NCBI GenBank assembly: GCA_964035545.1
Contig: OZ037773.1
Span: 8,337,751 to 8,401,750, forward strand
Length of the DNA stretch: 64,000 nt
Direction of reading: 5' to 3'
Origin: Bugula neritina
Taxonomy: Eukaryota > Animalia > Bryozoa
The position numbers and the translations under genes were made by a program. This document shows positions 30,501 to 64,000 of this stretch, piece by piece. A model generated the notes under the pieces. That model searched no databases and was not told where the DNA came from. It saw nothing but the letters and a program-made list of their open reading frames with translations. Each line of letters begins with the position of its first letter. The first letter of the stretch is position 1.

Positions 30501-33206
30501 GGTCGAGCTAACCTTGGGAAAAGGCAATTAATTAACTTTAGGGCGGATTCGTGGAATGTTATTATTTTATTTTTTGCCAGACTAAAAAACTGAAAATTAC
30601 AATTTTGAAGCTTTTCTAACCAAGTCTATGATCATAGTTTCTCCTAACTGAGAGAATTTGACTTCTATTTACCTCTGAGTTGTATTTCCATCTTACTCAT
30701 ATGATCTGCTACTCACCCTAAAATTATATGAATCATAGTCATGATAGAATTAATAACATGGCATATCTTGTACAGGGACGAAGTTCCCAGTCAAATCAAC
30801 TGCTTCTGGTATTTCCAGCATGGCTGGTTGTTCTGTCAGTTGCTGATTTCATAGTTTTTGGTGTAAAATATCTATTTCTCTCAGAATCACATACCAATAT
30901 GTTTGCTAGAAATATTTTTATGTACTATTTAAATACAATGATTGTTGTGTTGTTGTTTTTCCAATTTACACAAATATTTTGGAATAACTTTTTGGGAGGG
31001 AAAGGAACTTTTTGTAATTGGTTGAGTAATCAAACATTCTCATACCTGTTGACAGTACACCTGTTGACAGTGCACCTGTTGACAGTGCACATGTTGACAG
31101 TGCGCCTATTGAAAGTGCACATGTTGACAGTGCGCCTATTGAAAGTGTACATGATGAGAGCATGCAATGTGCATAGACTACACTTTTTATTGAATTTATA
31201 TTAACTTTCACATTGTTTTCATAATTTATCATACTATATTGTAATAGATTTATGAAAAAAAAAACAACTTCAAAACACAAGTTACAGTCGATTGTTTCAG
31301 TACATTACCAACTACTAGGGTGCTTTGACACAGTGAGAGTGTGAAAGTTCCTGGTGCACACCATCTTCTGGAGGGGGGAGGGGTGGTGGAGGGGGGAGGG
31401 GTGGTGGAGGGGGGAGGGTGGCGTAATCTTTTAGAGCAAATAACAACTGTGTGAATTTACTAATATTTGGAGTAATTGATTATAATTAGCAGATTTGAGG
31501 GGGTTGTTGGCTACTGTGACATAACAAACATAATATTTTGCAATCCAAATAGGACAATGTTGTTTAGCAACTGTTAGGTATTGTAATTTGTTGTTGAGCT
31601 GTGTCAAACCATAACAGGGAAATAAGGGAATGAGGGAAATATCTAATTGTTTATATCACTCTGGAATACCAAATTAGTAATAATTGACCAAAGAGTTGTT
31701 TGGTGCCATCTTCTACGGTTTTCAACTTCAGTTATGATCGAAAAGCTATAAAGCTTATATTACTACTAGCTGGTGTGGTGAGGTAATGCTGCTAGCAGGT
31801 ATGTTGGATGTGAAGAAACCAACTTGTTTATCGAAATGATTTTTGCGCCAGGTACCCCAACTGACAGTGCCAGTTCTCTCCCTCCAACACCAAAGACTCT
31901 ACCCGCAGTGCTCAACCGGACGACCTACCACGCTAGACTCGCTCTGGCTCGAGCTTTCATCAGGGAGGAGGCAAAAGATGAAACTGAGGCTGAGAAATAT
32001 TACCAGGAAGTGATGGTGATGGCCCCGGAGGTACTTATTGTTGACTTCAACAACTCAAGTCTTACTTTAACTGCCCAAGTATTACTTTAACAGTTCAAGT
32101 TTTACTTGAGAAAATATGATGGTATTTAAGTCATTTTAACATCAATGTAGTCTTTATGCTTACTATGCTTATAGGTACATGATGCTTACTATGCTTATAG
32201 GTACATGGTGCTTACTATGCTTATAGGTACATGGTGCTTACTATGCTTATAGTTACATGGTGCTTACTATGCTTATAGGTACATGATGCTTACATTGAAC
32301 TGGCCGACATGAAACTGAAATCAGACCCTCTCGGAGCTGTTGATATTTATTGCAAATTTCCCGTGCCAGAAGAGCCCAGTTTTGATGATGCGTACATATT
32401 TGGGGAGATTGTTCTGCTGCTGTTTAAACACGAAAAGTACGATCATCCTCACCTGGCCGACAATATGATTAGACTGGGACGTATCATGGGCATTGGTAAG
32501 TTAGTCCCAGCTGGTGCATTTCACTATTCTGTAGTCTAGATGGTAGATAATAACTATAGAATAATGCTGGAATGGACATGTAAAAATCAATGTATTAGCC
32601 AAGTTTAAACATAACTCTTCTTCTATATATATAAGTGCAAACATAGAAATGTATTTATACAAATTCTAGTGTACAGACTGTAAATACTGGGATGTACTGT
32701 GTCGAAAAACTTTGCTATGCCAATGCTAGGGGTTAAACCCTGATAGTATTATAGGTGAGGGCATTTGGTACTATAAGGGTACACCTCCCCCCCCGGATGG
32801 GGGGGTACACAACTTTGCTCAATAAACTTGTTCATGAAATATAGAAAGTCCTGGAATAACCTTGAGATCATTGATACAAACAAATCTATTTCTTTACAAG
32901 TTATCCTTTCTTGTCTGCAGGTTATACTTTTTTTCTGCAGGTTATCCTTTCTTGTCTGCAGGTTATACTTTCTTGTCTGCAGGTTATACTTTCTTGTCTG
33001 CAGCTTATACTTTCTCTTCTGCAGGTTATACTTTCTCTTCTACAGGTTATACTTTCTCTTCTGCAGGTTACCTTGATAAGTATGTAAAGAAGCTGGAGGA
33101 GAAATATAAAAATGACCTGCTGAAGAAAGTTTATGCCGGAGTAAACAGGAAGTCTGTAGATGACCCGGATATGATACAGTTCTTCAAGTTCAAGTACTGG
33201 GATTAG
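18576..33206 (+). CDS. Uncharacterised ~1101-aa protein: two cadherin-like beta-sandwich repeats, U-box-like segment, TPR-like helical repeats, Ala/Arg/Gly-rich linker
   Basis: Exons 18576-18737, 19711-19915, 20131-20297, 20428-20606, 20723-20841, 21405-21478, 21943-22108, 22414-22592, 22984-23112, 23259-23360, 23829-24037, 24497-24634, 26060-26200, 26825-27047, 27295-27496, 28020-28234, 29990-30149, 31852-32030, 32279-32495, 33067-33206 (3306 nt, open). Motifs: LSPTFNSKVFEY and LSPEFDSQHDEY with VSSEDGT..Y (cadherin-like beta sandwich). YHFHVGRLQVVQGLYDEAVTRLQSAL and ALYLLGVAQL (TPR-like). Confidence 0.85.
21035..21390. repeat. 20-bp minisatellite (AGTGTAGTATAACATGTGTC)n, ~17 copies
   Basis: Array ends ~14 nt before the acceptor at 21404. 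Confidence 0.92.
21492..21567. repeat. (GATAC/GATAT)n pentanucleotide repeat
   Basis: Begins 13 nt after the donor at 21479. Confidence 0.85.
22093..22411 (+). repeat. 35-bp donor-spanning minisatellite forming a whole intron
   Basis: Unit TTACCTACAACACCAG|GTRAAGTGTAGTATACATA. GT at 22109, 22144, 22179, 22214, 22249, 22284, 22319, 22354, 22389. Confidence 0.93.
22704..22870. repeat. 24-bp intronic minisatellite (CCCATGATGCAATAGAGAGTACTT-like), ~7 copies
   Basis: Visible as the SHDAIKST repeats in spurious ORF 22686-22988. Confidence 0.85.
23352..23828 (+). repeat. 34-bp donor-spanning minisatellite forming a whole intron
   Basis: Unit GCTACTCAG|GTACTGTGTATAGCACATACTGCAT. 14 copies from GT 23361 to GT 23800. 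Confidence 0.93.
25065..25205. repeat. Degenerate intronic repeat (TATACTCTTTATATTACTAATAGT core)
   Basis: Four imperfect copies. Confidence 0.65.
28232..28330 (+). repeat. 15-bp donor-spanning repeat (CAG|GTAGYGTKTCTA), 7 copies
   Basis: GT at 28235, 28250, 28265, 28280, 28295, 28310, 28325. Confidence 0.88.
31043..31152. repeat. 15-bp intronic repeat (ACCTGTTGACAGTGC)
   Basis: About 7 imperfect copies. Confidence 0.8.
31369..31421. repeat. G-rich repeat (GGAGGGGGGAGGGGTGGT)x3, G-quadruplex-capable
   Basis: Six runs of three or more G with short loops. Confidence 0.75.
32156..32293 (+). repeat. 26-bp acceptor-spanning repeat (TATGCTTATAG|GTACATGRTGCTTAC), 5 acceptors
   Basis: AG ends at 32174, 32200, 32226, 32252, 32278. 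Confidence 0.92.
32890..33070 (+). repeat. 21-bp acceptor-spanning repeat (GTTATACTTTCTYKTCTGCAG), 8 acceptors
   Basis: AG ends at 32920, 32940, 32961, 32982, 33003, 33024, 33045, 33066. Confidence 0.92.
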
Positions 33207-39660: not shown

Positions 39661-42241
39661 GGACACATCTAGCAAGGTGTTTGCAACAAGTGCTTGTTTC
39701 TGTGGCAGGCACCTGACACTTCGTGACAAGTACCTGTGTGGCAGGCATCTGGCACTGTGTGGCAAGTACTTGCGCTAGTGTGAAAAGCACCTGACACTGT
39801 GCGACAAGTACCTGTGCCTGTGTAACAAGTGCCTAACTCTTTACTCAGAATTTCCATAAATGACTACAATCAGACATCTACTGTCATCTTAGAGCCAAAG
39901 CTCTGCAAGAAAGCTCTGTACAATCAGACTAGCATGTGTGGGTACTACACTCACCCGTAAGAGGCCAGTATTATATATAAGTATAGTGTCCTAATTTCAA
40001 CTGAGTGCCTGTTGATTTTTAAGGGTATTATTTTTTGCATGTCATGTAATGATATTTGCACTATTTGAATCAGCACCTCATTACCAGAGGTTTATATATA
40101 TACATATGTGTACATATAATATTTATAAAAGTTTTTAAAACTTATTTATTTTTTTATTTATGCTACTAAAACTAAAATAAGTTTTTCAATATAAACTATT
40201 TTACTTGAAATAAAACAGCAAATAATTTGACATCAGTTTTACATCACGCATAATATACTTTGGAGTTAAGCATTCAGACTTACTTTATATAAACTAAAAC
40301 TTGTAAAAAATATAAACTAAAATCGTATAAACTTGTGGGTGTCGCAAGAGACGTCCCACTAGTCAAATGTTTATTTTATGTAACTTATTGGTTGCAGAGA
40401 TTATAAGTAGATTAGTTTTTATTGATAAAGGAAGTGCTTTGCAATACACCAGTGGTTTGTGGCTCTGCAATAATTGTGATAAGGGCAAATTAAGGGACAA
40501 AATGGATACTTTTGTTGAGCATAGTTTTAGACTGATAGAAAAACTAGCAACAATTAGCTAGAAAATGCGTATTTCTTAAAATCATGGCAACAGCAGGCTA
40601 TCTTAAATTTTGATAACTTAGACAAAAACAACACTGCAAAAAGCAAAAAAGTCAAATAAATCTCTGTTATTTAGGGTACAAATGCACTATTAGGAAAACA
40701 ATAGGGGAGGCAACCTTGATTACTCAGTGTTTTATGTTCAACAATAATACAATTTATTTTGAGGTGAAATGCGGTGCCAGGAAGAGATACATTTAACTAT
40801 AAAAATACTATGTGCAAAAGAAATGGGAGTTGTCTTCATTAAAAAACATAACTCTAACAACAACACGGGAGTTTTAAATACCTTGACATTAGCAAATATT
40901 CTGACAACGTGAACGAGCATATCGTTAACGAATCTATAATAACAGATACTCTCAGGTTAATACTTTTGCGGGAAATCCATGAACGTGATGGCACGAATAG
41001 GACGATAACAATTTCATTTTCCACAGTATTTCTATGTACTTGTAGTGTAAGTTGAAGTTTTCAACAGGTTTTTAATTATAATCATTCAATGTTAATATTT
41101 GCAAAAGAAAACCATGTATATTGTACAATATTAACTCGGGTACAATATTTATATTTTAAATTTAGTCCGGGAAAATTAAATGCAAAACTAAACGTGAAAG
41201 GTGAAACTAAAAGTTAAAACTAAAACTTAAGCTGTAAAACCAAATTTAAATTTAGTAACTTAACTGTAATTTTACTTTAGTAATTTAACTGTAAATTTAA
41301 ATTTATAAAGCTTAAACTGAACACTCGCTACTCATATTGATACTCATACTGACACTGCTACTGACAGTGACTACTCGGACTCAATGCAGGTACTCAATAG
41401 TGAGTAGACAGTTAAACTTAATGTTAATTCAAATTGTTATTGTTAGTGTAGCTGTAGCCGTAGGTTAGTACCAGTATGACTATGGCTATGAGCATCACTG
41501 CATCAGTAAATGTGAAACTAATAATATTAGTATGAGTATAAATATAAAATATATTTATAAGTCAAACTGTAACACTAACTAAAAAATTATAATTATATTA
41601 ATTATAATAATAACAATCTTTATTATATTAGAATAATATTATTGATTTTGCATACATATTAATATTGAAAGTGATATTAATGTATTTGATTTTATGATAA
41701 TAATTATGCTTAATTTTATTATAGTAACATTATTAATATTAATAATCATAATGATAGCTATGTGTAATGACTCGAAGTTGAAAAATAACCTAAATATTAA
41801 TAATAATAAATATTATAATAATGATTAGATAACTATCATGTGCTAAGTTATAGTTATTCTAAATAAAAGATTACTACTTCAACTGGAAATTAAAAGGAAA
41901 AAGAATAAAAAATTTTTAACCCTGATATTATTTCCAATACTCTTTTAAAAATTTTGTTGACTGCAATATAAATCTATGAAATAAATGTAAATATTGTAAA
42001 TTCATGTAAAAGTGAGATAATATATGGCTAATATGATAGTTGCTTCAAATAGATATGTTGTGTAGTAAATTACCAGGTGATTTGATGCAAGTTGCACTTT
42101 TCACCAAAGTTTTTATACTGTAACAAATGACTCAAATTCTTCATATTAGATCATGATGCTGTTTCATTTTAAAGAAATACTTTGTTGGATGCTAAATGCA
42201 CTGTAATTTTGTTTATTTGATATTTAGTAAGTTGAACAAAG

Positions 42242-45200
42242 ATGGAGTCACCTAAAAAGCGCCCTTTCCTCGAAGAGAATCCTCTAACATGTCAACGAAC
42301 CAGTCGACCCGCTAAAAAGCTCAAATCTGACTCAGAAACTAGTGGGAGGTGCCTATTAGTATCACTTCATTGTTGCAGACTTTCATTGAAATTTTCAACC
42401 AATCTAATTCCTTATTATAACAAAGTTACCAAAGTTTCTGCTTATTTTTATTGTCTTATATATATTGTCTATATAGTCAAGATATATTTTTCATTATGTT
42501 TAGTATATTGATTGACGGAATCTTAAGCCGAACTGGCAAGAAAAAAGGTCTCTCTCATAGGCTTGTACTGCAAGATTTGAATATTTGATTGTTATATGTC
42601 TTAGTGGGAAAGAAAACAAGGGCGTATCCTCGTGCCCCCTACCTCGAGGTCTGTATAATGAAAGTAACACATGCTACTTGAACAGTCTAATACAAGTGCT
42701 CTTCCACATACAGGCCTTCAGACAGCTTATCTTCTCCTTCACACCTCAGCAGTTTCACAAGGTAGTATTACACTCTCACCAGGTAGTATTATACTCTCAC
42801 AAGGTAGTATTACAGTCTCACAAGGTAGTATTACAGTCTCACAAGGTAGTATTACAGTCTCACAAGGTAGTATTATACTCTCACAAGGTAGTATTACAGT
42901 CTCACAAGGTAGTATTATACTCTCACAAGGTAGTATTATACTCTCACAAGGTAGTATTATACTCTCACAAGGTAGTATTATACTCTCACAAGGTAGTATT
43001 ACAGTCTTACAAGGTAGTATTACAGTCTCACAAGGTAGTATTACAGTCTCATAAGGTAGTATTACAGTCTCACAAGGTAGTATTATACTCTCACAAGGTA
43101 GTATTACACTCTCACAAGGTAGTATTATACTCTCACAAGGTAGTATTACAGTCTCACAAGGTAGTATTATACTCTCACAAGGTAGTATTACAGTCTCACA
43201 AGGTAGTATTATACTCTCACAAGGTAGTATTATACTCTCACAAGGTAGTATTATACTCTCACAAGGTAGTATTATACTCTCACAAGGTAGTATTATACTC
43301 TCACAAGGTAGTATTATACTCTCACAAGGTAGTATTATACTCTCACAAGGTAGTATTATACTCTCACAAGGTAGTATTATACTCTCACAAGGTAGTATTA
43401 CAGTCTCACAAGGTAGTATTATACTCTCACAAGGTAGTATTACAGTCTCACAAGGTAGTATTATACTCTCACAAGGTAGTATTACAGTCTCACAAGGTAG
43501 TATTATACTCTCACAAGGTAGTATTATACTCTCACAAGGTAGTATTATACTCTCACAAGGTAGTATTACAGTCTTACAAGGTAGTATTACAGTCTCACAA
43601 GGTAGTATTACAGTCTCACAAGGTAGTATTATACTCTCACAAGGTAGTATTACAGTCTCACAAGGTAGTATTATACTCTCACAAGGTAGTATTACACTCT
43701 CACAAGGTAGTATTACAGTCTCACAAGGTAGTATTATACTCTCACAAGGTAGTATTACACTCTCACAAGGTAGTATTATACTCTCACAAGGTAGTATTAT
43801 ACTCTCACAAGGTAGTATTATACTCTCACAAGGTAGTATTACACTCTCACAAGGTAGTATTATACTCTCACAAGGTAGTATTACAGTCTCACAAGGTAGT
43901 ATTATACTCTCACAAGGTAGTATTATACTCTCACAAGGTAGTATTATACTCTCACAAGGTAGTATTACAGTCTCACAAGGTAGTATTATACTCTCACAAG
44001 GTAGTATTATACTCTCACAAGGTAGTATTATACTCTCACAAGGTAGTATTATACTCTCACAAGGTAGTATTACAGTCTTACAAGGTAGTATTACAGTCTC
44101 ACAAGGTAGTATTACAGTCTCACAAGGTAGTATTACAGTCTCACAAGGTAGTATTACAGTCTCACAAGGTAGTATTACAGTCTCACAAGGTAGTATTATA
44201 CTCTCACAAGGTAGTATTATACTCTCACAAGGTAGTATTACACTCTCACAAGGTAGTATTATACTCTCACAAGGTAGTATTATACTCTCACAAGGTAGTA
44301 TTACACTCTCACAAGGTAGTATTACACTCTCACAAGGTAGTATTACAGTCTCACAAGGTAGTATTATACTCTCACAAGGTAGTATTATACTCTCACAAGG
44401 TAGTATTATACTCTCACAAGGTAGTATTACAGTCTCACAAGGTAGTATTATACTCTCACAAGGTAGTATTACACTCTCACAAGGTAGTATTATACTCTCA
44501 CAAGGTAGTATTACAGTCTCACCAGGTAGTATTACAGTCTCACAGGGTAGTATTATACTCTCACAAGGTAGTATTATACTCTCACAAGGTAGTATTACAG
44601 TCTCACAAGGTAGTATTATACTCTCACAAGGTAGTATTACAGTCTCACAAGGTAGTATTATACTCTCACAAGGTAGTATTATACTCTCACAAGGTAGTAT
44701 TATACTCTCACAAGGTAGTATTATACTCTCACAAGGTAGTATTATACTCTCACAGGGTAGTATTACACTCTCACAAGGTAGTATTACACTTACACATAAC
44801 ATATAATAGAGAGTTATACACATGTATAGTAAAATACGTAGTAATATATAGTCATATACAGTAATAATAATATTTAGGTTGTCCTATAGTTATGTAGATA
44901 TTTATGATAAATTCTGTTGTTAGAAACTGTCTGTGTTGGAGAGTCTTCAATGGCTTTTTCTGGAATTAAAAGAGGGGAGAGATGACAATAAAGTTGTTAC
45001 AACTAACAGACTGACCAAAGCGTTTGGGTGAGTCACTGTCTCGTATTTCTAATAGTCCATGTTATATAGATCCTTAGTCTATTTTTATACTTTTTACGGA
45101 AACTTGTAGCGTAATTACTAGTCGAGGAAATGTGATTTAATGATGAAAAGATAAAATTCGAAACTTTGTGTTTGATAAGCGTATTTCATTTTGGAACCGA

Positions 45201-48200
45201 TGAAGTATTTTTATTGATATTCCGACCATCATTTTTAGAATAAACAAATATATTTGTATTTTTATAAAAATATTTAAAAAACATGGATCTTCTACTTTAC
45301 AATTTTAAGGTTTTGTGTTTCCATCTTGTAACTCCTATAAAAAGCCCTTCTTATCAAACTAATGATATTCTATTGCCATTCTTGTATGGAACTTGTCTAC
45401 ACACTGTTTTTATAAAAGTAGGTTTTATATAATATGGCTTCTTTGATAAAAAATCAGATTTACATTTGTTTTTGGTAGTCAGTTATTTACCCTAAATGTT
45501 TGTCTTGGTTCATTAAAAAGTCACCCAATGTTTCCCCTACAACAAAAAAATAATTATGTCATGACCTAATTGCTATAGCCTCAAATAAATCTTGACTCAG
45601 AGTCAACATGACTTCGTAGGCTCTTGACTCAGTTATTGTCATGGCTGTTACGAAAGCAGTTGCATACCACAGCTGTAGTTAGTCATGTGTTTACCCGCTA
45701 GGGTTGGTATTGTAGATGGACGTCTATAAATAGAGGTCTGCAACAGGATGTTCACGAGTTTATGCAGACGCTCTTCAACTCTCTAGAGAAGGAACTGCAT
45801 CCGCACGACTTTCAGAAACTTTCTTCTCTCTTTGTTGGGAAAGTGCAGGTTAGAGACACTTGTGTTCTGTTGATAGTGAATATTATTGTATTTTTGTTAC
45901 CAGGTTGGTGAGTAGATAACTCTTCATGTAGTACAAGGGTGGACAATTCCTAAGATGAATTCTTGTCGATCTATGCTGTACAATTATATAGAAGCAAGTT
46001 TTTCTCAACTATATAGTAAATTTTATTTTCACACCTTGTTGCTCCGCTGGGAAAAGTTTAAGTTAACGAAACCCATTACTGGCTGAATTAGCAGATTATG
46101 TTTATTGGGCGGTATGTTACCACATTATGGTGCATGAGTAGCTTTGAAGTTATGCTCTCCTGTACGTACACACTTGCTGGTTGAAGTATTCTGTTAGCTG
46201 TGATTACATTAAATTCATTTCTTGTCGTATCGCAGTTCATGGTTTTGCTCCTAAAAAAGATGTGTATTTTTTTCAAGTAAGAAGTTATTCATGGTCTGTT
46301 ACATCAAAATATTCATTTTACTTCACCTGAAATATCACCTGCCTTTCATGAACTGACTCTGAATTATTCTTGCAGAGAGATATAACGTGTGATAAAGTCG
46401 GTTACAAGTCAAGAAAAACTGAAAGTATAATGGGTCTTTCTCTCTCAACTGCACCTCATATCAACAGTAAGTGTTTTATTTTTATGAGTTGTCTTCACTT
46501 TTACTCACCAAATGCTGGCCACTATTCTTATGGTACTTGACAATTTAAATTAATTGACCAACTAACTAATGTAATCAGCAATGACGTGGGCACTACATTT
46601 AGTAATATTCTAATGATGACTAGGAGTTGTGTTCTCAGCAACCTGTTGGTAAGCGTATGTTGCGGTTATAGCTGAGAGGTCTCTGGCAAGTATGTTCAAG
46701 TCAGAGCAGCTTGAGATGACTATAGAAGGTCAAGGTCGACAGGTTAGTAGTGATTTACTAGTTTAATGATGGCCGATAGATATACTTACTCACTCTGGCT
46801 GACTCACTAACTCACTCTGACTGATATAGTCAACCGCAAATTAGGAAGCTGTTGATGCATTACTACTTCCATACTATCACAACCGTAAGCATTTAATCTT
46901 TGTTAAATATTTATTGATATATTTGAGTCAGATAGTGATTGCGCAATCAATGTGATACCAATTTACTAACCATTCTTAAACTAGCAACTTAAATTTATTT
47001 TATGTGAGATCTACTTTTTTATTTGCTGTAGTTGTGATGTATTTTGTGATTGAAATAATAAAAATATTTTACATTGCACAAATATTTCTGCATATTGTTA
47101 TGGCTTTCCCAAAAATATTTTTATTGTTGACATCATCAATTAAGCCACTAAAACTTCAACTCTGCATTCAGCTATTCTGACCTACTCTAACTTACTCTTC
47201 AATGACCTACTAATTCCCGTGACTTAGAACACTGACTTACACTGATTTACTTGACACTAAATAATACTTGGTAAAGTGTATGAAATTCGGCATCTTACAG
47301 ACAGTAGAGTTGTCTTCCTCCCTGACAGCGCTGCCGAAAGTGCTTCTACTCACCCTCAACAGACTGACCTATGACCCCACTGAACAGGCTGTCGTCAAAG
47401 TGACTGATCAGTTAGTTATCTGCCATCTTTATTCACCTTCAGGGTTTCTTTCCATTCAGTTATATGAAACGCTGTGTCCTTTTTATCTACACTTTGCGAG
47501 TATATATTGTCAAGTTGTTAGATTTACATATTTCGACATCAAAATCAAACTATTTGAACGAAATGCTCAATGCTTTAATAATAATTTTTAACACTTCATG
47601 TAAAAAGCTTGATCTCTAATATTTAATGTATGTTGACAGCTTTGAGTACAGAGAGAGTTTAGAGCTCTGTGGACATACGTACATACTCCACTCGGCTGTC
47701 GTACACGAAGGTGGTGCAGAGTCGGGCCATTATTACTGCTACATCAGTCCTCAGTGTGACCATACAGTGGTAAGAGCTAGTGTGACCATACAGTGGTAAG
47801 GGATAGTGTAACTATACAGTAGTAAGAGATAGTGTTACCATGCAGTGGTAAGGGATAGTGTTACCACACAGTGGTAAGGGATAGTGTTACCACACGGTGG
47901 TAAGAGCTAGTGTTACTACACAGTACTAAGAGATAGTGTTACCACACAGTACTAAGAGATAGTGTTACCACACAGTAGTGAGTAGTTCTACTAACTCCTA
48001 ATCTTGCAGTGGTACAGGTTTAATGATGCTGAAGTGGTTACTTCTGATACGACGTCTGCAATCAGAGAGAATTATGGGAAGAGAAGTTATCTGCTCGGTC
48101 CAACTGCTTACCTGCTGACGTATATAAGGAATGACTGTGGCGAGGGTGAGTCACCTTCTTGTGCTGCCTTGTACTCTGTATAGTTATACATGTCTTCGTA

Positions 48201-51200
48201 TAGTTATACATGCCTTCGTATAGTTATACGTGCCTTCGTATAGTTATACGTGTCTTCGTATAGTAATACATGCCTTTGTATAGTAATACATAACTTTGTA
48301 TAGTTATACAATACAATAGTCTGTATCTCAGTATAATAATGCACAACTTCATATATTACTGTACGTCTCAGTAGAATAGTTTGTGTTCCACAATTTAGTA
48401 TTTAGTATAGAGGGCAGTTCTTTGACACCTCTTTTATTTTTGAAGAATTCTTCAGACCTAAAGCAGTGGACATTCCAGAAAGTCTAAGAGTCAGAATAAA
48501 TGACGTCAAGTAAGTTTCTCCGCTCTTCTCGTAGATCTCTCTTACAATGACATATCCAGCTACTTGTTGACACATACATAGCTACTTGCTGACACATACA
48601 TAACTGCTGCTACTGTTGCCTAGCAGAGAGGCTTGCTCTACATTTACGTATATTAGCAAAAACACAATTCGTACTTTGCACTTGGAGTAAGAACTGTGTT
48701 TGAGAATTACGAGTTCCTTTATTAAACTTTTGTCTTGTATTTAGAAATGTTGAGCAGTTGAGACAGGAGCGTTTGCGGACAGCCCACCTCTACACGACTG
48801 TGTCTTTGGTGCCCTGGGCTATGCTGCACCATCACGGCGGGTACGACGTTTGTGATAGACTGAGTATGGACGACTTGCATAAGCAGGGTGAGGGGGCGCA
48901 GGAGACGGGCCTCGTTACTGTTAGAGTGATGAAGACCAGCACTGTGGCTGAACTGGTGACCAGCTATGATTCGGTTTGTGACTACGTTAATATACACTGT
49001 GTAGTATACACTGTATAGTATACACTGTAGTAGTATACACTGCGTAGTATACACTGTAGTAGTATACACTGTATAGTATACACTGTATAGTATACACTGT
49101 AGTAGTATACACTGCGTAGTATACACTGCGTAGTATATACTGCGTAGTATACACTGTATAATATACACTGTATAATATACACTGTATAGTATACACTGTA
49201 GTAGTATACACTGCGTAGTATACACTGTATAGTATACACTGCTTAGTATACACTGCGTAGTATACACTGTATAATATACACTGTATAATATACACTGTAT
49301 AGTATACACTGTAGTAGTATACACTGCGTAGTATACACTGTATAGTATACACTGCGTAGTATATACTGCGTAGTATACACTGCATAATATACACTAGATA
49401 GCGCATACTGTGCAGTATATATACACACTGCGTGGCATACACATATCACATTGTATATTGTGAAACATATTGTCAATGCTGTAGTGTATACTTTATAGTA
49501 TAATTTACGTGGTCTAGTATTTAGTATGGTAGTTTGTATACTCTGTAGTGCGTATTGTATATACTGTAATGTGTATTGTGTAGACATTATACTGTAGTTC
49601 ATGCAGCATAGAATATTGTATTTCTTGTAGTCGATGAATGAAAGCAACTGTAGACTTTGGGCTTTTACCGACAGAGAATCTGCTGATGGCTGGGCAGTGC
49701 ACCGCCCCGACAAACTTGTCAAGTGCTGGACCAAAACTATAGCTGAGGTTTCTCAGATGTGAGTTACTTATCACTGAATCAGCGCTGCTAGTAGTCGAGC
49801 GAGACAAATTGTTGAATTGTGATTCCGATAGCTTTCAGTTGCCCTGCAATAATGGGAATATAAATATAAAGTTATAATAAACTCACAGCTGGCTAATTTG
49901 TAGATTATCATTGGCCAGAATTAAGGGAAACCTAATGACTAGTGTTTAGTAATCATTTAATTTCTTATTATAAATATGTATAAAGTTCAATGTTTAACTT
50001 TTTGCTTTCTACTCATTATCAAACTTTTGAATTATTATAAAATAATGCTTTGAGAAGTTACCCACTCATCTGTCATTTGAAGCTCATCATAGCTTGTGTT
50101 CTTCACAGGAAGTGTCCTTTCTACTTGTTTATGGAGAAGGTTGGGGTTGCGGACCACCCGACAATACTCTCGGAGACGCAACTCAGCGCATTCGTAAAAG
50201 TCTACTCAAAAATCACAGAAAGAGTTAGTTTAGAACTGCATCTAATATTAGATATAGACATTACTATAGGTGAGTATAACTAACAGAATGTAGACTTCAT
50301 GTGTACCATTGATCTCTACTATTTGGTAAGCATGATGTACATACTCTATACTTTATTCTTTCAGGAGACCTCAAGTATAAAATACTCCAGCTATGTGGTT
50401 TAGAGGATCAGAGTGATGATGTCATTCTCTATCAGGTTGGTCAGTCCTGTCACTCATATTGAGTTTAATATACATATAATAGTATGATATATTATTCATA
50501 TAACATATAGTAATATATAGTAATATAATAATATAATATTATATATTATATATTGTGAGATATAGTAATATAATAGTATAATATATAATAAATTGTGTTA
50601 TAGCATAAATTGTGTTATAGCATATAATAATATAAAATGATAACTTGTGTTACAACATATAGTAATAATATAATATATGATATAACATCTAATAATATAC
50701 TGATAATATTTTCATATCCTGAGTATTTAGTGAAAGTGGAATTAGCTTCTGAATAATTATAAAATTTAGTTGTTTTTAAGACACCAACAATACTCATGTG
50801 TGTTTATCTTGGGCTGTCTGTCTGTCTGTATGTCCGTCTGTCTGTTTGTCTGTCTGTGTGTTTGCTTGTTATATGTTTAATCTCTGTCTCTAGGAATTCT
50901 CCTCGATGTCTACAGAAGCAGTTCACTGTGAAGACTCCACTGAGCTCTACGAAGCTCTAGACTCACATCTGCTCAGACACGGCACAGTATTCATTCTAGA
51001 GGTCAGTGGTGTGCCGAAGAGTACGGAGAGCATAACTCCCAGTTCTCACTCAGATAGCAGCTCGTCAGCAGTCAGCTCAAAGCAAGATGGCCGCAGTGCA
51101 GCTGATTACATGAGGTATGCATACCTACCTGTATATACATCTACCTGTACATCTACCTGTACATACATCTACCTGTACACCTACCTGTACATACACCTAC

Positions 51201-54200
51201 CTGTATATGCACTTACTTGTATATGCAGGAGACTCGGTAATAAGGTCGCAGTGTCCTGGTACAATAAAGACAGGAAATACACTCCGTCACAAGACAGTGA
51301 CTTCACTTTGCCATTATCTCTAGACATGAGACTCTGTGATGTCACAGCTATGCTAGCCAATCACCTTCACTGCGGCAGCCGGCAGCTACGAGTCTTTGAG
51401 GCCAGAAGGTGGGTTCCTCACTTCCTGTACATATAGTCTGCACCACTAGCTTGGCTTTTCAACAGCAATGGATGTGTTTTCAATTATTTATAACTCATTT
51501 CATCTAGTTATTGTACACAGTGCCTTTTGATGAGTCAGATTCTGCTTGCTAGTATATAAATAGAGTGAGTGAGTGAGTGAGTGAGTGAGCGAGTGAGTGA
51601 ATGATTGAGTAAGTGAGTGAGTGAGTGAGTGAGTGAGTGAGTGAGTGAGTGAGTGAGCGAGTGAGTGAATGATTGAGTGAGTGAGTGAATGACTGAGTGA
51701 GTGAGTGAGTGAGTGAATGAGTGAGTGAGTAAGTGAGTGAGTGAGTAAGTGAGTGAGTGAGAGAGTGAGTGAGTGAGTGAGAAAGTGAGTTAGTTAGTGT
51801 AAACATAGACTCAGTGCCCAGAATATGCTATCTGAGACGTAGAGCAAAGGGATGGTAGCCTCTCAGTTTATGCCATGTCTCTGTCAGCTAACACCACGTT
51901 ATGTGATGCTTTAGAGATCAAGGATATCCGCAGTTATCACAGCACAAAGTATATGATAGCTTAAGTTCCAACAATCTCTTGGCTCCTCTGTACAAACAGG
52001 TGCAACACTCCCCTCTCTGGAGACATGCAGCTGTCCTCTTTTACCAGCAGGTTTGTTCCAGAGCTTTCTTAACAATAATCAATTCAGCTATCGTATCTTC
52101 CATGATTAACTCACTATGCTAAAACCAGTATAAATTAGATATGCTAAAACAGTACATCTGAATATTTGTTGATGGAATTTCAAGGGAAAGTATATATTAT
52201 ATTATATTATATTATATTTAGTACTATCCCTCTATTATTATGTTTCCAAGCATTATGCTTATGGAGTTTTCATTCGATGTTTGTGAATAGTTGCATGGAA
52301 TGAAACCGCAACCACAAATTCATCTGTACGAGCATCCAGTCACCAGTCACATTATTGCGCAGTGTATACGCATAAAGAGCTGCTGTTTGTAGTTACCAAT
52401 GAGTATAGAGGAGATGGAAATCCGACACACTCTCAGCTGTCTGTTTGTCTCCCAGGACTTACTTTCAGTACGTACACTCACTTTGTATCCTCTCAAACAA
52501 AAGAGTTCTCTAACAGACTCGCAGAACTCTGGAGGTTCAGAACCCGAGGAGGATTCACCACCGTCCCCTACCACTGTGTCTTATCTGTTGCAACTAGCAA
52601 GGAAGGAGCTTTGTCTTGATCACCCTCTCAGGTCTATTGTGTTGCTCATTATTACATTACTCAATTACTCATCATTACATTACTCATCATTACATTACTC
52701 ATTATTACATTACTCATTATTAAATTACTCAGTGCAATACATTACTGGATAATGTATTACTGAATGTTGCATTACTGAATATTACATTACTGAATGTTGC
52801 ATTACTGAGTGTTGCATTACTGAATATTACATTACTGAATATTACATTACTGAATAATACATTACTGAATAATACATTACTTTTGTATTACATTACTGAA
52901 TATTACATTACTGAATAATATATTACTTTTGTATTGCATTACTGAATAATACATTACTGAATAATACATTACTGAATAATACATTACTGAATATTAAATT
53001 ACTTAGTTTTACACACATGATTAACACAGTTTCACTGCAGTTTTTTTAAACATATTTTCTACTTTCAGACTCCTTTCAGTGACTGGGAAAAGGATATCAA
53101 AGATCTGCAAAGAAGAGCATTTGGTCTCTTCATTGCTGAAAGAAGAACTCAGGTTAGAAGAGATCCCGGAGTCCGAAGAGGATATTGAGATGGAGTTTAC
53201 TAAGGTGTTAGCCTCAGTGGTCCTCGACAGTGCATATCTTGCGAAACGGGGCGTGTCTACACACCCCTTCCTTCTGGTGGTAGATCGGTCAGACACGGGC
53301 GATGTTATTCGAAACAAGATCTGTGGAAGATTAAAGATATCTGATGACTGGAAACACAAGGTGTGGTATTATTTTCTCTCTATAGTCTAATGAAATAATT
53401 GGAATAGGTTAATATAAATGAAATAAAAAATACTGAATACTGTTATAACAAATTAAAGTATAATAATATTTAATATTAAAATAGTTCTGTAAAATTAAAA
53501 AGTTATTTTACTACTGAAAAATTGTATATATTTAAATCTTTATTAAAACGCTGCACTATGTGATAAAATTTTAGTCAAATGACTAATTAGTAAACACAGT
53601 TATTATAACTTATAAAAACATAAACTATGAAAACAACCATGGAATTCTAACAATAAAACAAGTATTGAATGTAAGGAACATAAAAATACTCACTCAAAGG
53701 TTTGGCAGAATCACCAAAGAGTGTAAACCTTTTACTATACATTTTATCGTTAGTATCAAAGAGTATAACTGTAAAAGATGTGATAAGGCAACATGCTTCA
53801 GTGAGTGGCAGATGTGAAGTGATTGTTTAGTGTTACCAATTGTTGAAATGATTGTAAGACGCAATGGAATAGGTATTTAATTTCTGCATTGTTGTTTTTT
53901 ATTATTTGTAGAACAATAGCAATATATCTCATTGATTAAACATTCCAAATTAAAAACTGATTCTGAATTTGACAGTAAAATAATTGATCTGTGGAATTTA
54001 TCTTTATAATATTTAGGGTATTAATTTATATTCATTTGTAATTCCCAATACTTAGACCTCTACCTCTGCCATTTGATCTCTACTTCTGCCACTTGACCGC
54101 TACCTCTGCCATTTGATCTCTACCTCTGCCATTTGACCTCTACCTCTGCCGTTTAACCTCTACCTACCTATGCTTTTATAGTTTATGACAAGTTAAACTC

Positions 54201-55250
54201 ACTGTGACATCACACACACTTTGACTCATGCATTTTGCTAACTCATACATGTTGGCTACCTTTAAACTTCAATTCCTTCTAATCAAATTGCAAAATTTGG
54301 CACGGCGGTCAATCAAATGATGCTACACATAATTTATGCCACACACTATATAATATTCCCACAAGCTATGATGTAATAAACATGCTATCTATTTTACAGA
54401 TGGAGCTGAAGCTGGTAATGCCAGGAAGAGTATCTACGCCCCTACCTGATGGGAAGTTGACTGTAAGAGACTGGGCTAACCTCGCTTATGATGATGATAC
54501 AGGTGTGTACTCTGGCCTAGTAGCTCAGTCAGTCACAGAGTATAGTTAGTGATTGAGTCCAGTTAGTGGTTGAGTCCAGTTAGTGATTGAGTCCAGTTAG
54601 TGGTTGAGTCCAGTTAGTGATTGAGTCCAGTTAGTGGTTGAGTCCAGTTAGTGGTTGAGTATAGTTAGTGATTGAGTCCAGTTAGTGATTGAGTCCAGTT
54701 AGTAGTTGAGTCCAGTTAGTGATAGCTTTTAAAACTTCCAATGTGATTTACATTTAGCTCTGCCACCTGATTATGTTATACTTTTGCATTCACTGCATCT
54801 TTTTTCGAATCCAATTTAAAGTCACAATATTTCGAATTTTCTTCTTTACAAAAATAAAACCACTCCTTGCGGTTTGTAGCAACTTATATGTGAAATTGCC
54901 CAGCTTCACCCATTCAATTACCACGGCAAGTTTTTTCTTAGACTGTGATTCTATCATTTAGTTTAAGCTGGCTGGAAGGATTTTCAGGCTATCCTGACAA
55001 AATATGATGCTATGCATTGGTACTTGTTCAACCATCAGATTGTTTGGTTTTGGATTAATACATTGAACTTAATGCATCTATTTATTTGTAATATATCCAT
55101 TGAAAATCCATATCCAACGTTTAATCAATAGTAATATATCCATTAAAATACACATGCAGTATTTAACTGATGTCAATATATCCATTGACAGGGTCTTACG
55201 AAGGATGCAACTATATAAAGATTACAGATCGACTTCAAGTAACTCTCTAG
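42242..55250 (+). CDS. Divergent USP7-like ubiquitin carboxyl-terminal hydrolase (peptidase C19) with C-terminal UBL-like region, no MATH domain
   Basis: Exons 42242-42348, 42605-42761, 44924-45027, 45716-45848, 46376-46466, 46672-46742, 47301-47410, 47640-47769, 48010-48145, 48446-48509, 48745-48973, 49631-49758, 50109-50269, 50365-50435, 50894-51114, 51229-51408, ~51850-52050 (boundaries unresolved), 52393-52631, 53069-53360, 54400-54502, 55192-55250. Cys box GLYNESNTCYLNSLIQ, LTKAFGW, QQDVHEF, LPKVLLLTLNR, His box LHSAVVHEGGAESGHYYCYI, WYRFND, ENYG, TAYLLTYIR, and USP7-like AHLY, LRLEEIP and HPFLL. Confidence 0.85.
42755..44790 (+). repeat. 21-bp donor-spanning minisatellite, 96 full units / 97 donors
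   Basis: Unit TCACAAG|GTAGTATTA(TAC/CAG/CAC)TC. First GT 42762, last GT 44778. Difference 2016 = 96 x 21. Frame open throughout (ORF 42585-44864). Confidence 0.97.
47753..47983 (+). repeat. 26-bp donor-spanning minisatellite forming almost a whole intron
   Basis: Unit AGTGTGACCATACAGTG|GTAAGAGCT. GT at 47770, 47796, 47822, 47848, 47874, 47900, then two variant units, then GTGAGT at 47978. TACTAAC branch motif at 47989-47995 and acceptor at 48009. Confidence 0.9.
48178..48310. repeat. 20-bp intronic repeat (GTATAGTTATACATGCCTTC)
   Basis: About 6.5 copies starting ~30 nt after the donor at 48146. Confidence 0.85.
48990..49400. repeat. Compound 14-17-bp minisatellite (TAGTATACACTG core)
   Basis: About 27 core copies right after the donor at 48974. 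Source of the spurious minus-strand ORFs. Confidence 0.9.
51118..51225. repeat. TACATCTACCTG-type repeat filling a 114-nt intron
   Basis: Intron 51115-51228. Confidence 0.8.
51563..51792. repeat. (GAGT)n microsatellite
   Basis: Long tetranucleotide tract; each repeat junction reads GTGAGT. Confidence 0.95.
52645..52995. repeat. 15-bp minisatellite (ATTACATTACTGAAT / ATTACATTACTCATC)
   Basis: Fills most of intron 52632-53068. Confidence 0.88.
54055..54165. repeat. 20-bp repeat (GACCTCTACCTCTGCCATTT), ~5.5 copies
   Basis: Direct reading. Confidence 0.85.
54538..54723. repeat. 17-bp repeat (AGTTAGTGRTTGAGTCC), ~11 copies
   Basis: Starts ~35 nt after the donor at 54503. Confidence 0.9.
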
Positions 55251-59025: not shown

Positions 59026-60645
59026 CCTGATTCGATGGGACTGTTTAAGACAAGAACGTACAATGCTTGACAAAGAGCCATGATCACGAGCACGTAGTCT
59101 GTGTGACTGTTGATGTTCAGGAGGTTGGAGCAGTTACAGTCACTGGTTCAGAAGTTGAGGCCACATCTAGTTGAGTTACCAAAAGACTGTCCAGAAGATG
59201 AGTTGAGGTGTTTGTAGAGATAAATTCTGAAACAAGAGTATAATTACTGATTGCAGAAGAGTTGTTTGTCCTTGAACCAATCTCACTAGATTTGTGCTAC
59301 GTGAAACACCACCGCCGCCGCCACCACCACTACCACCACCACCTCCAGCAGCTTTGACTACATCTACCTTCAAAGGTTTTGTATTTTGTGTGATTAAGGT
59401 CTTAACAATTTTTGGAATGGTGTTGGCTAATTTACCCAGAGAGTTCCCAGAGTTTGTTGCTTTATCATCTGTTTCATGTGCTTTGCGAGATAAAGTAGTG
59501 GTTTTGCTCAACAGTGTGCTAAGGTAGCTCTCCTTCAGTTGTAGTTGTCTGGTCAGAGATAGTGCTTCTTTGAATGGTTGGTTGGGTAGTTGTAGTGGTT
59601 GGTTGGGTAGTTGTAGTGGTTGGTTGGGTAGTTGTAGTGGTTGGTTGGGTAGTTGTAGTGGTTGGTTGGGTAGTTGTAGTGGTTGGATTAGTAGTTGTAG
59701 TGGCTACTTGTGTATATGGTGTTACTGAGATTGTTCTTGTAGTTGTATTATTACTTGTAAGCAGTTACGGAGTTGCTCGAATGGCTGACGGAGTGAGCAT
59801 ATTAGTTGAATGAGTTGTCCTTTTTGTTGCTGGCACAAATTTATCAATCTTATCAATCGGTTGAAAATATTTGGCAGTTGATTGAATTGTCGCAGTGACT
59901 GATTGAGTAGCACTGATGATTGGTTGAGTAGAATTATTGATCGAGCAAGCAGATTTTGTGCATGGGTGAGTAGCTGCAATGACATGTCTAGCAATTGTTG
60001 TTGCTCGTAGTGATATGGTGATAGTTTGTATAGTTGTAATCGTTCAACCACTTGTTTTAGTCGAAATTTGAATAAGTCAGTTGATTTGTTGACTAGACGT
60101 AATGCAAGACTGCCTAGTTGTAGTGTTTGGATTACCCGATATACTGGTTGCTGTATAAAAACAAAATAGAGAATGTGGTTTAACATTAAATGAAATAAGC
60201 AGATAAATGACAATGTGAAGTCATCTTAGTTAAAGCTATACTTCAAATTTAAATAAATGGGAACTTAACTGTCTTTCAAAGATATTAATAGTTAAGGTTG
60301 CTTTATTGAGCATATCTTAGTGATAAAATGAAATTAGAAAGTGTCTTGCTGACGCTACAAAAATATTTGGTAAGGCATTTCAAAGTTTATGAAATAAAAT
60401 TCACAAAAAATCGTTTTCCTTAGCTTTGAAAAATCAGCTTTCAATAATCAAAATTGTCATTTTCATGTGAAATCATAAAATAAAACATAACCAAATCCAT
60501 ATCTGATATCAACAGTTTTCGATAACAACATATATAAAATATTACCTCATGTAAGGAATCCATTTCCAAGTTGCTTGCAGCAATATGTGTTGCAGTTATT
60601 ACAGCAGCCAGGCCGGCAGTAACAAAATTAGCATTTTCATTAAAA
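59026..60645 (-). pseudogene. Thr-rich mucin-like paralog B (partial, multiple stops and frameshifts)
   Basis: 60150-59360 parallels 57939-57240 with several in-frame stops. Includes a 21-bp TTTTQPT repeat (59575-59700) and a poly-Gly tract (59307-59348). The last exons are missing. Confidence 0.65.
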
Positions 60646-61447: not shown

Positions 61448-64000
61448 TCAACTGAGAGACAACAACAGAGATGCATGCATAATCGAGGCCAGAGTTATTT
61501 CTGCAGCAGAACTGGCTTCTCCACCTTTTGGCTGGTCTTTAGTTGCCATTTCAGATTTTGCTGCTTTTGGCAGTTCCTTAACGCCCTAAAAGAGAATGAA
61601 ATTTGACTGAAAGGGACTGCATGTGGCAAAGAAAGAACTCTAATTCCATGCATAATAGGTTCTTGCAATGAAATTGCAGTAAAACTAGTTCGTTCTTTTA
61701 ACAGTTCCAGTTTCCAAAGTTTAGACTGGTGAGAAATTAAAGCAGTAAAACACTCCATTTCCACTATTATAAAGAGGAAGACACTATTCTGATTTGAACA
61801 AAAATAAAGCCAACTAATACCAGAAGTTTGGTTGCCGATAACATCTGATATCTAGATTCTGATGAACAATTTTTATTCAGCTAGTGATTTAATACTGAGT
61901 TTACCTGTGGATCTTTTACTCCACTTCTTAGTTCTTTCAACGTAATGCTGTCCTCAAGTAGATCAGTTGTGATTTCAGACGTAAACAATATTGTAAAAGG
62001 TTTAGTTTCATTAGACTTAGTAGATGTAGTAGCAGACACAGTATATGTAGCAGGAACAGTAGATGTAGTAGGAACAGTGGATGTGGTAGACATAGTAGAT
62101 GCAGTAGTAGCCACAGCAGATGTAGTAGCTACAGTATATGTAGTAAACACAGTAGATGTGGTAGCAGGAACAGTAGATGTAGTAGTAGGAACAGTAGATG
62201 TGGCAGCAGCTACAGTAGATGTAGTAGCTACAGTAGATGTAGTAGGGACAGCAGATGTAGTAGCTACAGTATATGTAGTAGGAACAGTAGATGTGGCAGT
62301 AGCTACAGTAGATGTAGCAACTGGTTTAGCAGATGCAGTGTCCACTTCTGTAGATGAAAAGATTGACTTGGCAGAGGCAGTGATAGTTTCAGCAAGCACA
62401 GTACCTGTATCACCAAAAATATAACCATGAAGTCATACATTTGCTTGTCTGAGAAGCAGAAAAACAACATCTTGTTAGCACAGGGCTGCTTTTAAAAACT
62501 TCAAAATCTGAAAAAAATCATTTACCTGATTCGATGGGACTGTTTGGCACAAGTTTATAAAAAACTTGACAAATCGGGAACCACCATGGACAAGTAGTCT
62601 GTCCAACTGTTGATGTTGAGGAGGTTGGAGAAGTTGCAGTGACTGGAAAAGCAGTGAGCTTGATGTGGAAAAGACCAATACCATGGAGACGCAATTCACT
62701 CATGGATATGAAAATTTGAAATATTCGTTAAACTTTCCACATATTTTGCTAGAAGTCCAGAACTCATTATCCTGTTTGATTGAGATACTAAAAGTTAGTT
62801 TAAAAAGTGTTGCAAATTCTGAGGCTTCCATATAAATTGTATAATATTACAACCCTTTGTGATATTGAGTACAAGCAGTTGACCCACAAAGCTTAGCTAC
62901 AAGCGCTCTATGGGACATTAAATTTGTAACAATATGTATAAAACCTAAGCACAAAATCAGTGCTATGTGAACACTTGAATATGACCCTCAGGTGTTACCA
63001 TTTTAGACGTAGCAAGTTTTTTAAATACTTGATTACCTTTTAATAGATGAGACGAAGCTTCCATGTGCCCAGTAGCTTTGGCTAGATATCCCTTCAAAGG
63101 TTTTGTATTTTGTGTGACTACGAGAATTTCTGTTTTCTCAGCAATTTTTGGAATGGTGTTGGCTAATTTAGCCGGAGAGTTCCCAGAGTTTGTTGTGTTA
63201 TCATCTGTTTCATGTGCTTTGGGAGGTAAAGTAGTGGTTTTGCTCAACAGTGTGCTAAGGTAGCTGGTGATGGCTGGCTTTCCTTCAGTTGTAGTAGTCT
63301 GGTCAGAGATGGTGCTTGTTTGAGTGGTTAGCTGGGTAGTCGTAGTGATTGGTTTAGTAGATGTAGTGGTTGGTTTAGTAGGTATAGTGGTTGGTTTAGT
63401 AGGTGTAGTGGTTGGTTGAGTAGGTGTAGTGGTTGGTTGAGTAGATGTAATGGTTGGTTGAGTAGTTGTAGAAATTGGTTGAGTAGATGTAGTACTTGGT
63501 TTAGTAGTTGTAGTGGTTGGTTTAGTAGTTGTAGTGGTTGGTTGAGTAGATGTAGTGGTTGGTTGAGTAGATGTAGTGGTTGGTTGAGCAGTTGATTGAG
63601 TAGATGTAGTAGTTGGTTTGGTAGTTGTAGTGGTTGGTTGAGTAGATGTAGTGGGTGGTTTAGTATATGTAGTGGTTGGTTTAGTAGGTGTAGTGGTTGG
63701 TTTAGTAGGTGTAGTGGTTGGTTGAGTAGATGTAGTGGTTGGTTGAGTAGATGTAGTGGTTAGTTGAGCAGTTGATTGAGTAGATGTAGTAGTTGGTTGG
63801 GTAGATGTAGTGGTTGGTTGAGCAGTTGATTGAGTTGATGTAGTGGTTGGTTTGGTAGTTGTAGTGGTTGGTTGAGTAGATGTAGTGGTTGGTTGAGTAG
63901 ATGTAGTGGTTGGTTGAGTAGATGTAGTGGTTGGTTGAGCAGTTGATTGAGTAGATGTAGTGGTTGGTTTAGTAGATGTAGTGGTTTGTTTAGTAGGTGT
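61448..64000 (-). CDS. Thr-rich mucin-like paralog C (5' end outside window; possibly disrupted)
   Basis: Open TTSTQPT repeats from 64000 run into LSTLLSKTTTLPPKAHETDD (62963-63247). Further exons ~62700-62525, 62404-61906 (TTSTVA repeats) and 61585-~61448, which has a +1 nt difference relative to paralog A. Confidence 0.6.
63330..64000 (-). repeat. 21-bp coding minisatellite (ACTACATCTACTCAACCAACC = TTSTQPT)
   Basis: Direct reading; continues past the window edge. Confidence 0.92.

Follow-up and report, generated by a model that had tools for sequence, protein, structure and literature searches.

We found that the dominant mRNA of a predicted ubiquitin-specific protease (USP) gene in this bryozoan uses the first, exon-adjacent donor at 42762, which stands at the head of a 21-nt minisatellite that carries the same 5' splice site another 96 times into the intron. 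The array arose in place, by local tandem duplication of the exon/intron junction. The probable explanation, in our view, is a neutral intronic minisatellite, born at this locus, with a first monomer that lies across the exon 2/intron 2 boundary, with the first donor in use and the other copies silent. Positions are those of the window, the whole 64-kb stretch of DNA that was analysed, and the exons, splice sites and arrays of the USP gene lie on its plus strand.

The USP gene and its 21-nt array

The genome that hosts the array is 216 Mb long with 35% G+C. The only database relative of exon 2 was a Watersipora subatra 'ubiquitin carboxyl-terminal hydrolase 7-like' protein (P0001, 1052 aa), and mapping P0001 on the window, together with a search for frame-keeping GT..AG pairs, delineated a gene of about 20 exons running from 42242 to 55229. 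The coding part of exon 1 (42242-42348, from the ATG to the donor GAG/GTGCCT), with a predicted boundary, is similar to the N-terminus of P0001 and ends in two bases of a split codon that is completed at 42605. Exon 2 (42605-42761) carries the Cys box (…GLYNESNTCYLNSLIQ…TPQQFHK); it matches the Pfam family UCH (E 8.9e-9), its PDB matches are USP chains, it is 68% identical to P0001 over the exon, and its end recurs as an overhang in the RNA contigs described below. Exon 3 (44924-45027, KLSVLESLQWLF…TKAFG) is 67% identical to P0001 and is delimited by RNA contigs that join 45026/7 to 45715/6; a PDB search with this exon returned only designer PPR repeats, which came from summed weak repeats and were discarded as spurious. 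The His box lies in exon 8 (47640-47769; Pfam UCH, E 8.5e-6), bounded by the RNA joints 47410>47640 and 47768/9>48009/10, and a C-terminal exon gives a weak USP7_C2 match (Pfam, E 1.6e-4). P0001 itself possesses UCH (PF00443), USP7_C2 and USP7_ICP0_bdg domains, the Pfam accessions listed being PF00443, PF14533 and PF12436. Judged by its Cys box, His box and USP7-type C-terminal domains, the gene is a ubiquitin-specific protease of the USP7/USP47 branch, and the UCH match of exon 2 bears out the initial annotation in placing the array within the USP catalytic domain, after the Cys box. The assembly holds this locus alone, with no paralogue of the gene, and Rfam gave no match over 42000-45500.

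TRF reports a single array at 42755-44790 (period 21, 97.0 copies, 94% matches, 0% indels, score 3491) that repeats the exon end together with the 5' splice site. Cutting it in register from 42762 yields 97 units, each exactly 21 nt long and each starting GTAGTA, just as expected of the in-frame donor ladder without net indel that had been proposed for this stretch. The three bases before GTAGTA are AAG in 93 units, CAG in two and AGG in the remaining two. The authentic 5' splice site AAG/GTAGTA occupies 42762-42767, as identified by contigs of RNA runs X1, X2 and X3 in which the end of exon 2 is followed by AAACTG…, and 96 pseudo-donors follow it at 42783…44778, sharing its sequence between -7 (or -9) and +12. 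Read against textbook U1 pairing this donor is weak, as it forms five Watson-Crick pairs and one wobble with the 5' end of U1 and lacks a G at +5. The array start at 42755 falls 7 nt before the end of exon 2 at 42761, such that the head-to-tail array begins in the exon and runs into the intron, the last 7 bases of exon 2 (9 in the RNA alleles) being the start of the repeat unit. Behind the last unit lies a unique, AT-rich intron tail (44791-44923) with a pyrimidine tract and the acceptor (…TTGTTAG/), where RNA contigs start fitting at 44922/44924. The range of possible introns, from 2162 nt at the longest to 146 nt at the shortest, and that of the inserts, 0-672 aa, all in phase 0, follow arithmetically from these coordinates, in agreement with the values first given.

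Within the unit, the fourth codon varies, and across all 97 units it reads TAC (54), CAG (32) or CAC (11) and never TAG, which matches the earlier observation. At its edges the array carries CAC, in the first unit and again in the final two, and a single substitution separates this variant from TAC or from CAG. Variant units are intermingled, with no sign of a longer period; unit autocorrelation stays near its chance level of 0.38 at all lags, and no higher-order repeat was found in the array. In the DNA run X4, the word depth of the array is ~70-fold that of the single-copy flanks and one contig runs from exon 2 into the array, which together argue that the array is not an assembly artefact and speak for a long array at the DNA level.

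With regard to origin, a search pattern built from one unit and its flanking sequence matched 96 times genome-wide (216 Mb), all at this locus, against 0 for the control. An array unique in the genome implies birth in place by duplication, and a dispersed satellite or transposon as the source of the 21-mer was ruled out by the same 96/96 matches. Each unit joins the closing bases of exon 2 (TCACAAG for the window allele, TCTCACAAG for the RNA alleles) to the intron start GTAGTATTACAC. Slippage or unequal exchange would have duplicated this 21-bp piece, made of the last 7-9 exon bases and the first 12-14 intron bases, and the piece would then have been amplified to 97 copies, leaving the donor AAG/GTAGTA repeated 96 times within the intron. 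The unique intron after the last unit (TTACACATA) is similar to the unit start, a likeness that would plausibly have supplied the microhomology for the first slippage event. In the Watersipora orthologue, an intron at the same protein position has the donor CAG/GTTCGT and no repeat there, from which it follows that the array is specific to the present lineage.

Two further features were seen in the Watersipora gene, namely a 101-bp x 2 duplication across the 3' splice site of its Cys-box exon (L011:3339-3544) and, in the gene model, an additional exon of 33 aa that separates the Cys-box exon from its successor, exactly at the position of the array (L011:6444-6542). Separately, the last 14 bases of exon 2 (window 42745-42757) hold three differences between the window allele (…CAGCAGTTTCACAAG, QQFHK) and all RNA runs (…CGGCAATCTCACAAG, RQSHK), which is denser than the ~4-5% of other exons and could be the trace of an exchange of sequence between array and exon end.

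Donor choice in the transcripts

Three of the runs are likely RNA, of which X1 and X2 share a sample and X3 belongs to another study, and X4 is DNA; two of the RNA runs are labelled 'symbiont metagenome'. Run contigs were aligned to 44589-48200, a stretch that spans the last ten units, the intron tail and exons 3-9. The X1, X2 and X3 contigs cover exons only, with GT..AG joints at every intron examined, and this pattern identifies all three runs as RNA. At 44922 the RNA contigs overhang, and the last 30 letters of the overhang correspond to the end of exon 2, departing from the window at three positions; the overhang ends TCTCACA, followed by AG/AAACTG, so that exon 2 ends in TCTCACAAG. The contigs reach ~300 nt upstream of exon 3, from where a 703-nt contig of X2 runs through exons 3-6 and a 416-nt contig of X3 runs through exon 3 into exon 4, and in both runs a single unbranched contig crosses the exon 2-exon 3 junction.

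These RNA contigs are 95-96% identical to the window, the alleles of the sampled animals being 4-5% different. Because the assembly holds no paralogue, contigs at this identity represent alleles of this locus, and a paralogue as their source was ruled out on the same ground. Direct exon 2-44924 contigs from alleles of this locus in turn mean that the dominant mRNA uses the first donor. The initial annotation had posed two alternatives, and the one in which only the first donor is used is thus supported by contigs of X1, X2 and X3 that have exon 2 directly before 44924. Array depth in X1 is 26.6 against an intron background of 3.5-6, far lower in relative terms than in X4 (~70x flanks) and measured on collapsed contigs, and it suggests fewer copies in the RNA-sampled animals, whose alleles may carry a much shorter array than the window does. 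Further downstream, a low-depth X1 contig (4.4 vs 55) joins 46161 to the exon 5 acceptor at 46376 (window 46127-46161) with 144 unmatched letters upstream, and may represent a minor alternative exon or noise.

Minisatellites whose first monomer lies across an exon-intron boundary form a known class that includes F7 IVS7, IFI6/6-16, CBS, LMNB2 and PDGFA (PMC1557585). In human F7 intron 7, a 37-bp VNTR with 5-9 repeats, splicing takes place at the authentic donor alone (Borensztajn et al. 2006, PLoS Genet 2:e138; PMC1557585). Mutational analysis there revealed that the pseudo-sites are functional and that the most upstream functional site always wins, a choice that could be explained neither by intronic elements nearby nor by the predicted secondary structure, and its authors concluded in favour of 5'-to-3' oriented scanning, with exon definition contributing (PMC1557585). 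As summarized in that paper, IFI6/6-16 intron 2 has 25 pseudo-sites and constitutively uses the first donor plus the two nearest (Turri et al. 1995, NAR 23:1854), CBS intron 13 (31-bp VNTR, 15-20 repeats) uses the first donor and two pseudo-sites, and LMNB2 (100 bp x 10-15) and PDGFA intron 4 (81 bp x 16-18) use the authentic donor only (cited in PMC1557585).

The USP array shares with F7 IVS7 a boundary-spanning first monomer, identical pseudo-donors, a weak donor and use of the most upstream site. The two differ in scale, with 5-9 copies of 37 bp (4 exon and 33 intron bases) in F7 against 97 copies of 21 bp (7-9 exon and 12-14 intron bases) here, and the USP array further departs from F7 in that every copy is in frame, in its bryozoan host, and in that its pseudo-sites are known from sequence and RNA contigs, whereas those of F7 were tested by mutation. 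IFI6 (6-16), with an in-frame repeat unit of 12 nt, is likewise a short-unit minisatellite with many repeated donors; its two nearest pseudo-sites are used, whereas none was seen in use in the USP array at contig level, and the USP copy number is about four times higher. CBS, LMNB2 and PDGFA also repeat the exon/intron junction, the latter two with use of the authentic donor only, but their units are longer and their copies fewer (10-20), and CBS uses two pseudo-sites.

With its authentic donor repeated downstream (97 GTAGTA starts) and its first site used, the USP array is a new, extreme member of the F7/IFI6-type class, and its 97 near-identical 5' splice sites competing for one acceptor are far above the human cases as that paper cites them (F7 5-9, IFI6 26, CBS 15-20; PMC1557585). 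The selectivity puzzle raised at the outset is accordingly real, but novelty cannot be claimed for it, as it has been described and experimentally dissected for human F7 IVS7 and is seen in IFI6, CBS, LMNB2 and PDGFA (PMC1557585). What the array provides is a clean natural substrate for testing donor choice, and it is no new kind of element or protein.

Mechanistically, the spliceosome would take the most upstream, exon-adjacent copy, and the other copies would be silent pseudo-sites, lost from the transcript together with the 2162-nt intron. If the choice works as in human F7 IVS7, it could reflect commitment in 5'-to-3' order on a first-come basis, probably during transcription and with help from definition of the 157-nt exon. 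RNA structure was rejected as the cause of selectivity, the first donor being predicted no more accessible than the downstream copies (unpaired probability 0.0035 vs a downstream mean of 0.011).

The silence of the downstream copies could also be incomplete. The next one or few donors might be used at a low level, adding in-frame 7-aa inserts (VVLHSHQ/VVLYSHK…) after the Cys-box helix and producing minor mRNAs that escape NMD. The downstream sites are, after all, identical to the authentic one over the span given above, products in phase 0 would be stable, second and third copies are used in the IFI6 and CBS cases cited in PMC1557585, and the Watersipora gene model, with 33-37 extra residues at the same protein point, hints at a loop that tolerates inserts. 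We nonetheless consider such leakage unlikely. A contig made from the first donor would read CACAAG/AAACTG after exon 2 sequence and one made from a downstream donor would have GTAGTATTAYASTCTCACAAG before AAACTG, and no joint between an array copy and 44924 occurs in the contigs of the three RNA runs (X1 at ~55x), with 10 copies lying in the aligned stretch; contigs drop rare variants, and this evidence would miss rare forms, being blind to downstream donor use at a few percent. The single unbranched contig over the junction in both X2 and X3 points the same way, as does the exclusive use of the first site in F7, LMNB2 and PDGFA as reported in the same source.

A second junction array and the repeat context

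The same gene possesses a second minisatellite at an exon end (47753-47976, 26 nt x 8.6; TRF, sequence and RNA joints), which combines the final 16 bases of exon 8 with GTAAGAGNTA and retains six intact GTAAG donors. X1, X2 and X3 all splice from its first copy (47769/47770) to 48010. Since 26 is not divisible by 3, an in-frame period is no condition for junction arrays to persist. Both arrays of the USP gene, in a lophotrochozoan, obey the most-upstream-site rule, thereby extending the oriented-scanning or first-come observation beyond mammals.

Tandem repeats are abundant around these arrays, as 66 of them make up 16.4% of the window and they account for 41% of the USP gene's intron bases; at such coverage, arrays that touch splice sites are expected by position alone. 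Of 63 window minisatellites, 38 are free of indels and 29 have a period that is a multiple of 3. Judged from sequence, two arrays of the gene next to it upstream (32156-32293, 26 nt x 5.3; 32900-33070, 21 nt x 8.2) repeat a putative 3' splice site (…TTATAG/ and …TCTGCAG/, respectively) plus the first exon bases, with the last monomer spanning the intron-exon boundary, and the 21-nt array is also open in the frame of its exon. The motif AGGTR is present in 12 of 37 window minisatellites (at least 3 copies) vs 3.2 +/- 1.7 in shuffled units, and the 5-mers GTAGT, AGGTA and GGTAG are ~5-fold over-represented relative to the non-repeat background. GTAGTAT(A) recurs in the arrays at 4451, 12338, 21057, 22093, 42755 and 48992 and may represent a shared, repeat-prone core. 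A very long minisatellite with a 13/26-nt unit, 65-128 copies and similar word content lies at L013:1166-2848 (G000 contig C5), so that arrays of ~100 copies are not unique to the USP intron.

A broader reading can be built from these observations, in which the first-donor rule would be leaky in animals with long alleles, a few transcripts would be NMD-immune USP isoforms with inserts that grow in 7-aa steps by the catalytic helix, and array length would tune splicing efficiency. Junction-spanning minisatellites, of which the 64-kb window holds four (two RNA-verified), would then sit at many genes of this genome, maybe seeded by a GTAGTAT-like core. We judge the combination quite unlikely to hold as a whole; were it true, the genome would be a natural, genome-wide test bed for 5'-to-3' scanning outside mammals.

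Very improbable, in our assessment, is a regulatory role, in which the repeated U1-binding sites would serve as a landing pad, boosting the first donor or shielding the long and AT-rich intron, or in which recursive splicing at the AAG/GTAGTA junctions would remove the array in steps, with repeat number tuning expression. The array does offer U1 as many as 97 potential binding sites, each junction between units looks like a weak 3' site directly followed by a 5' site (CTCTCACAAG/GTAGTA), the units can pair together (predicted MFE -35 kcal/mol for 8 units), and CBS VNTR length affects splicing or expression according to a title cited in PMC1557585. The Watersipora orthologue, however, is without the array, which is therefore not conserved. 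Such arrays are made everywhere in this genome, and predicted accessibility is the same across sites and makes no distinction among them.

The open frame of the array

Frame 0 continues from exon 2 (...TPQQFHK) without a stop over 767 codons (42561-44861), and the initial annotation was right to call it open throughout the array. Openness of this kind is not evidence of coding, because 3 of the 6 frames are open or nearly open across the whole array (frames +0 and -2 without a stop, frame +2 with one). A random 7-codon unit of the same composition would be open with P = 0.60, stop-creating single substitutions number 3-5 of 63 per unit in frame 0, and with the six to eight mutations that can be traced in the array, ~0.5 stops would be expected. 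Array variants are mostly non-synonymous, at ~5 to 1 (Y/H/Q, H>Y, K>Q and K>R vs one synonymous).

The missing TAG codon can be read in the same light. A genealogy from CAC without recombination between sites 2 nt apart predicts exactly the three codon variants observed, which renders the absence of the fourth uninformative; the caveat originally attached to it, that a missing TAG is expected if CAC is ancestral, is strengthened by CAC at both array edges with TAC and CAG one step away. Homologues of the heptad protein were absent among 5.8 billion sequences, a collection from which this species' own proteins also seem to be absent. Pfam PF21300 (grass antifreeze beta roll, 7-periodic), matched on the translated array, had no significant stretch of its own and was rejected as a periodicity artefact. 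The heptad segment showed none of the signs of coding selection that we looked for, namely a frame open beyond expectation, a synonymous bias and homologues.

A functional isoform ladder, in which many of the 97 donors would be used and the heptads would be translated and under selection as a USP-domain insert whose length varies, has in its favour 679 open codons in frame 0, a period divisible by 3, no indels and no TAG, but it can hardly be credited when half of the frames are equally open, the variants lean to the non-synonymous side, so few stops are expected, the three haplotypes fit a genealogy without recombination, no such protein is known among the sequences searched, the RNA contigs show a direct exon 2-exon 3 junction, and the out-of-frame 26-nt array in the USP gene behaves alike. 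The second alternative of the initial annotation, that of isoforms with a beta-prone heptad insert, is consequently left unsupported, with 3 of 6 frames open and no contig joint from array to exon 3. With the array as a neutral, locally born minisatellite, which we regard as the probable explanation, faithful copying of one stop-free unit would yield all three features, namely an open frame, a period that is a multiple of 3 and the lack of TAG, as by-products.

For annotation, the array serves as a warning that long open frames over minisatellites in this repeat-rich genome are not to be called exons. Toward the end of the window, open frames run through long in-frame repeats with units of 18-21 nt (CSGWLGS and VDVVGT types) at 59528-59725, 61888-62421 and 63332-64000, and these possibly belong to a genuinely repetitive coding gene or genes.
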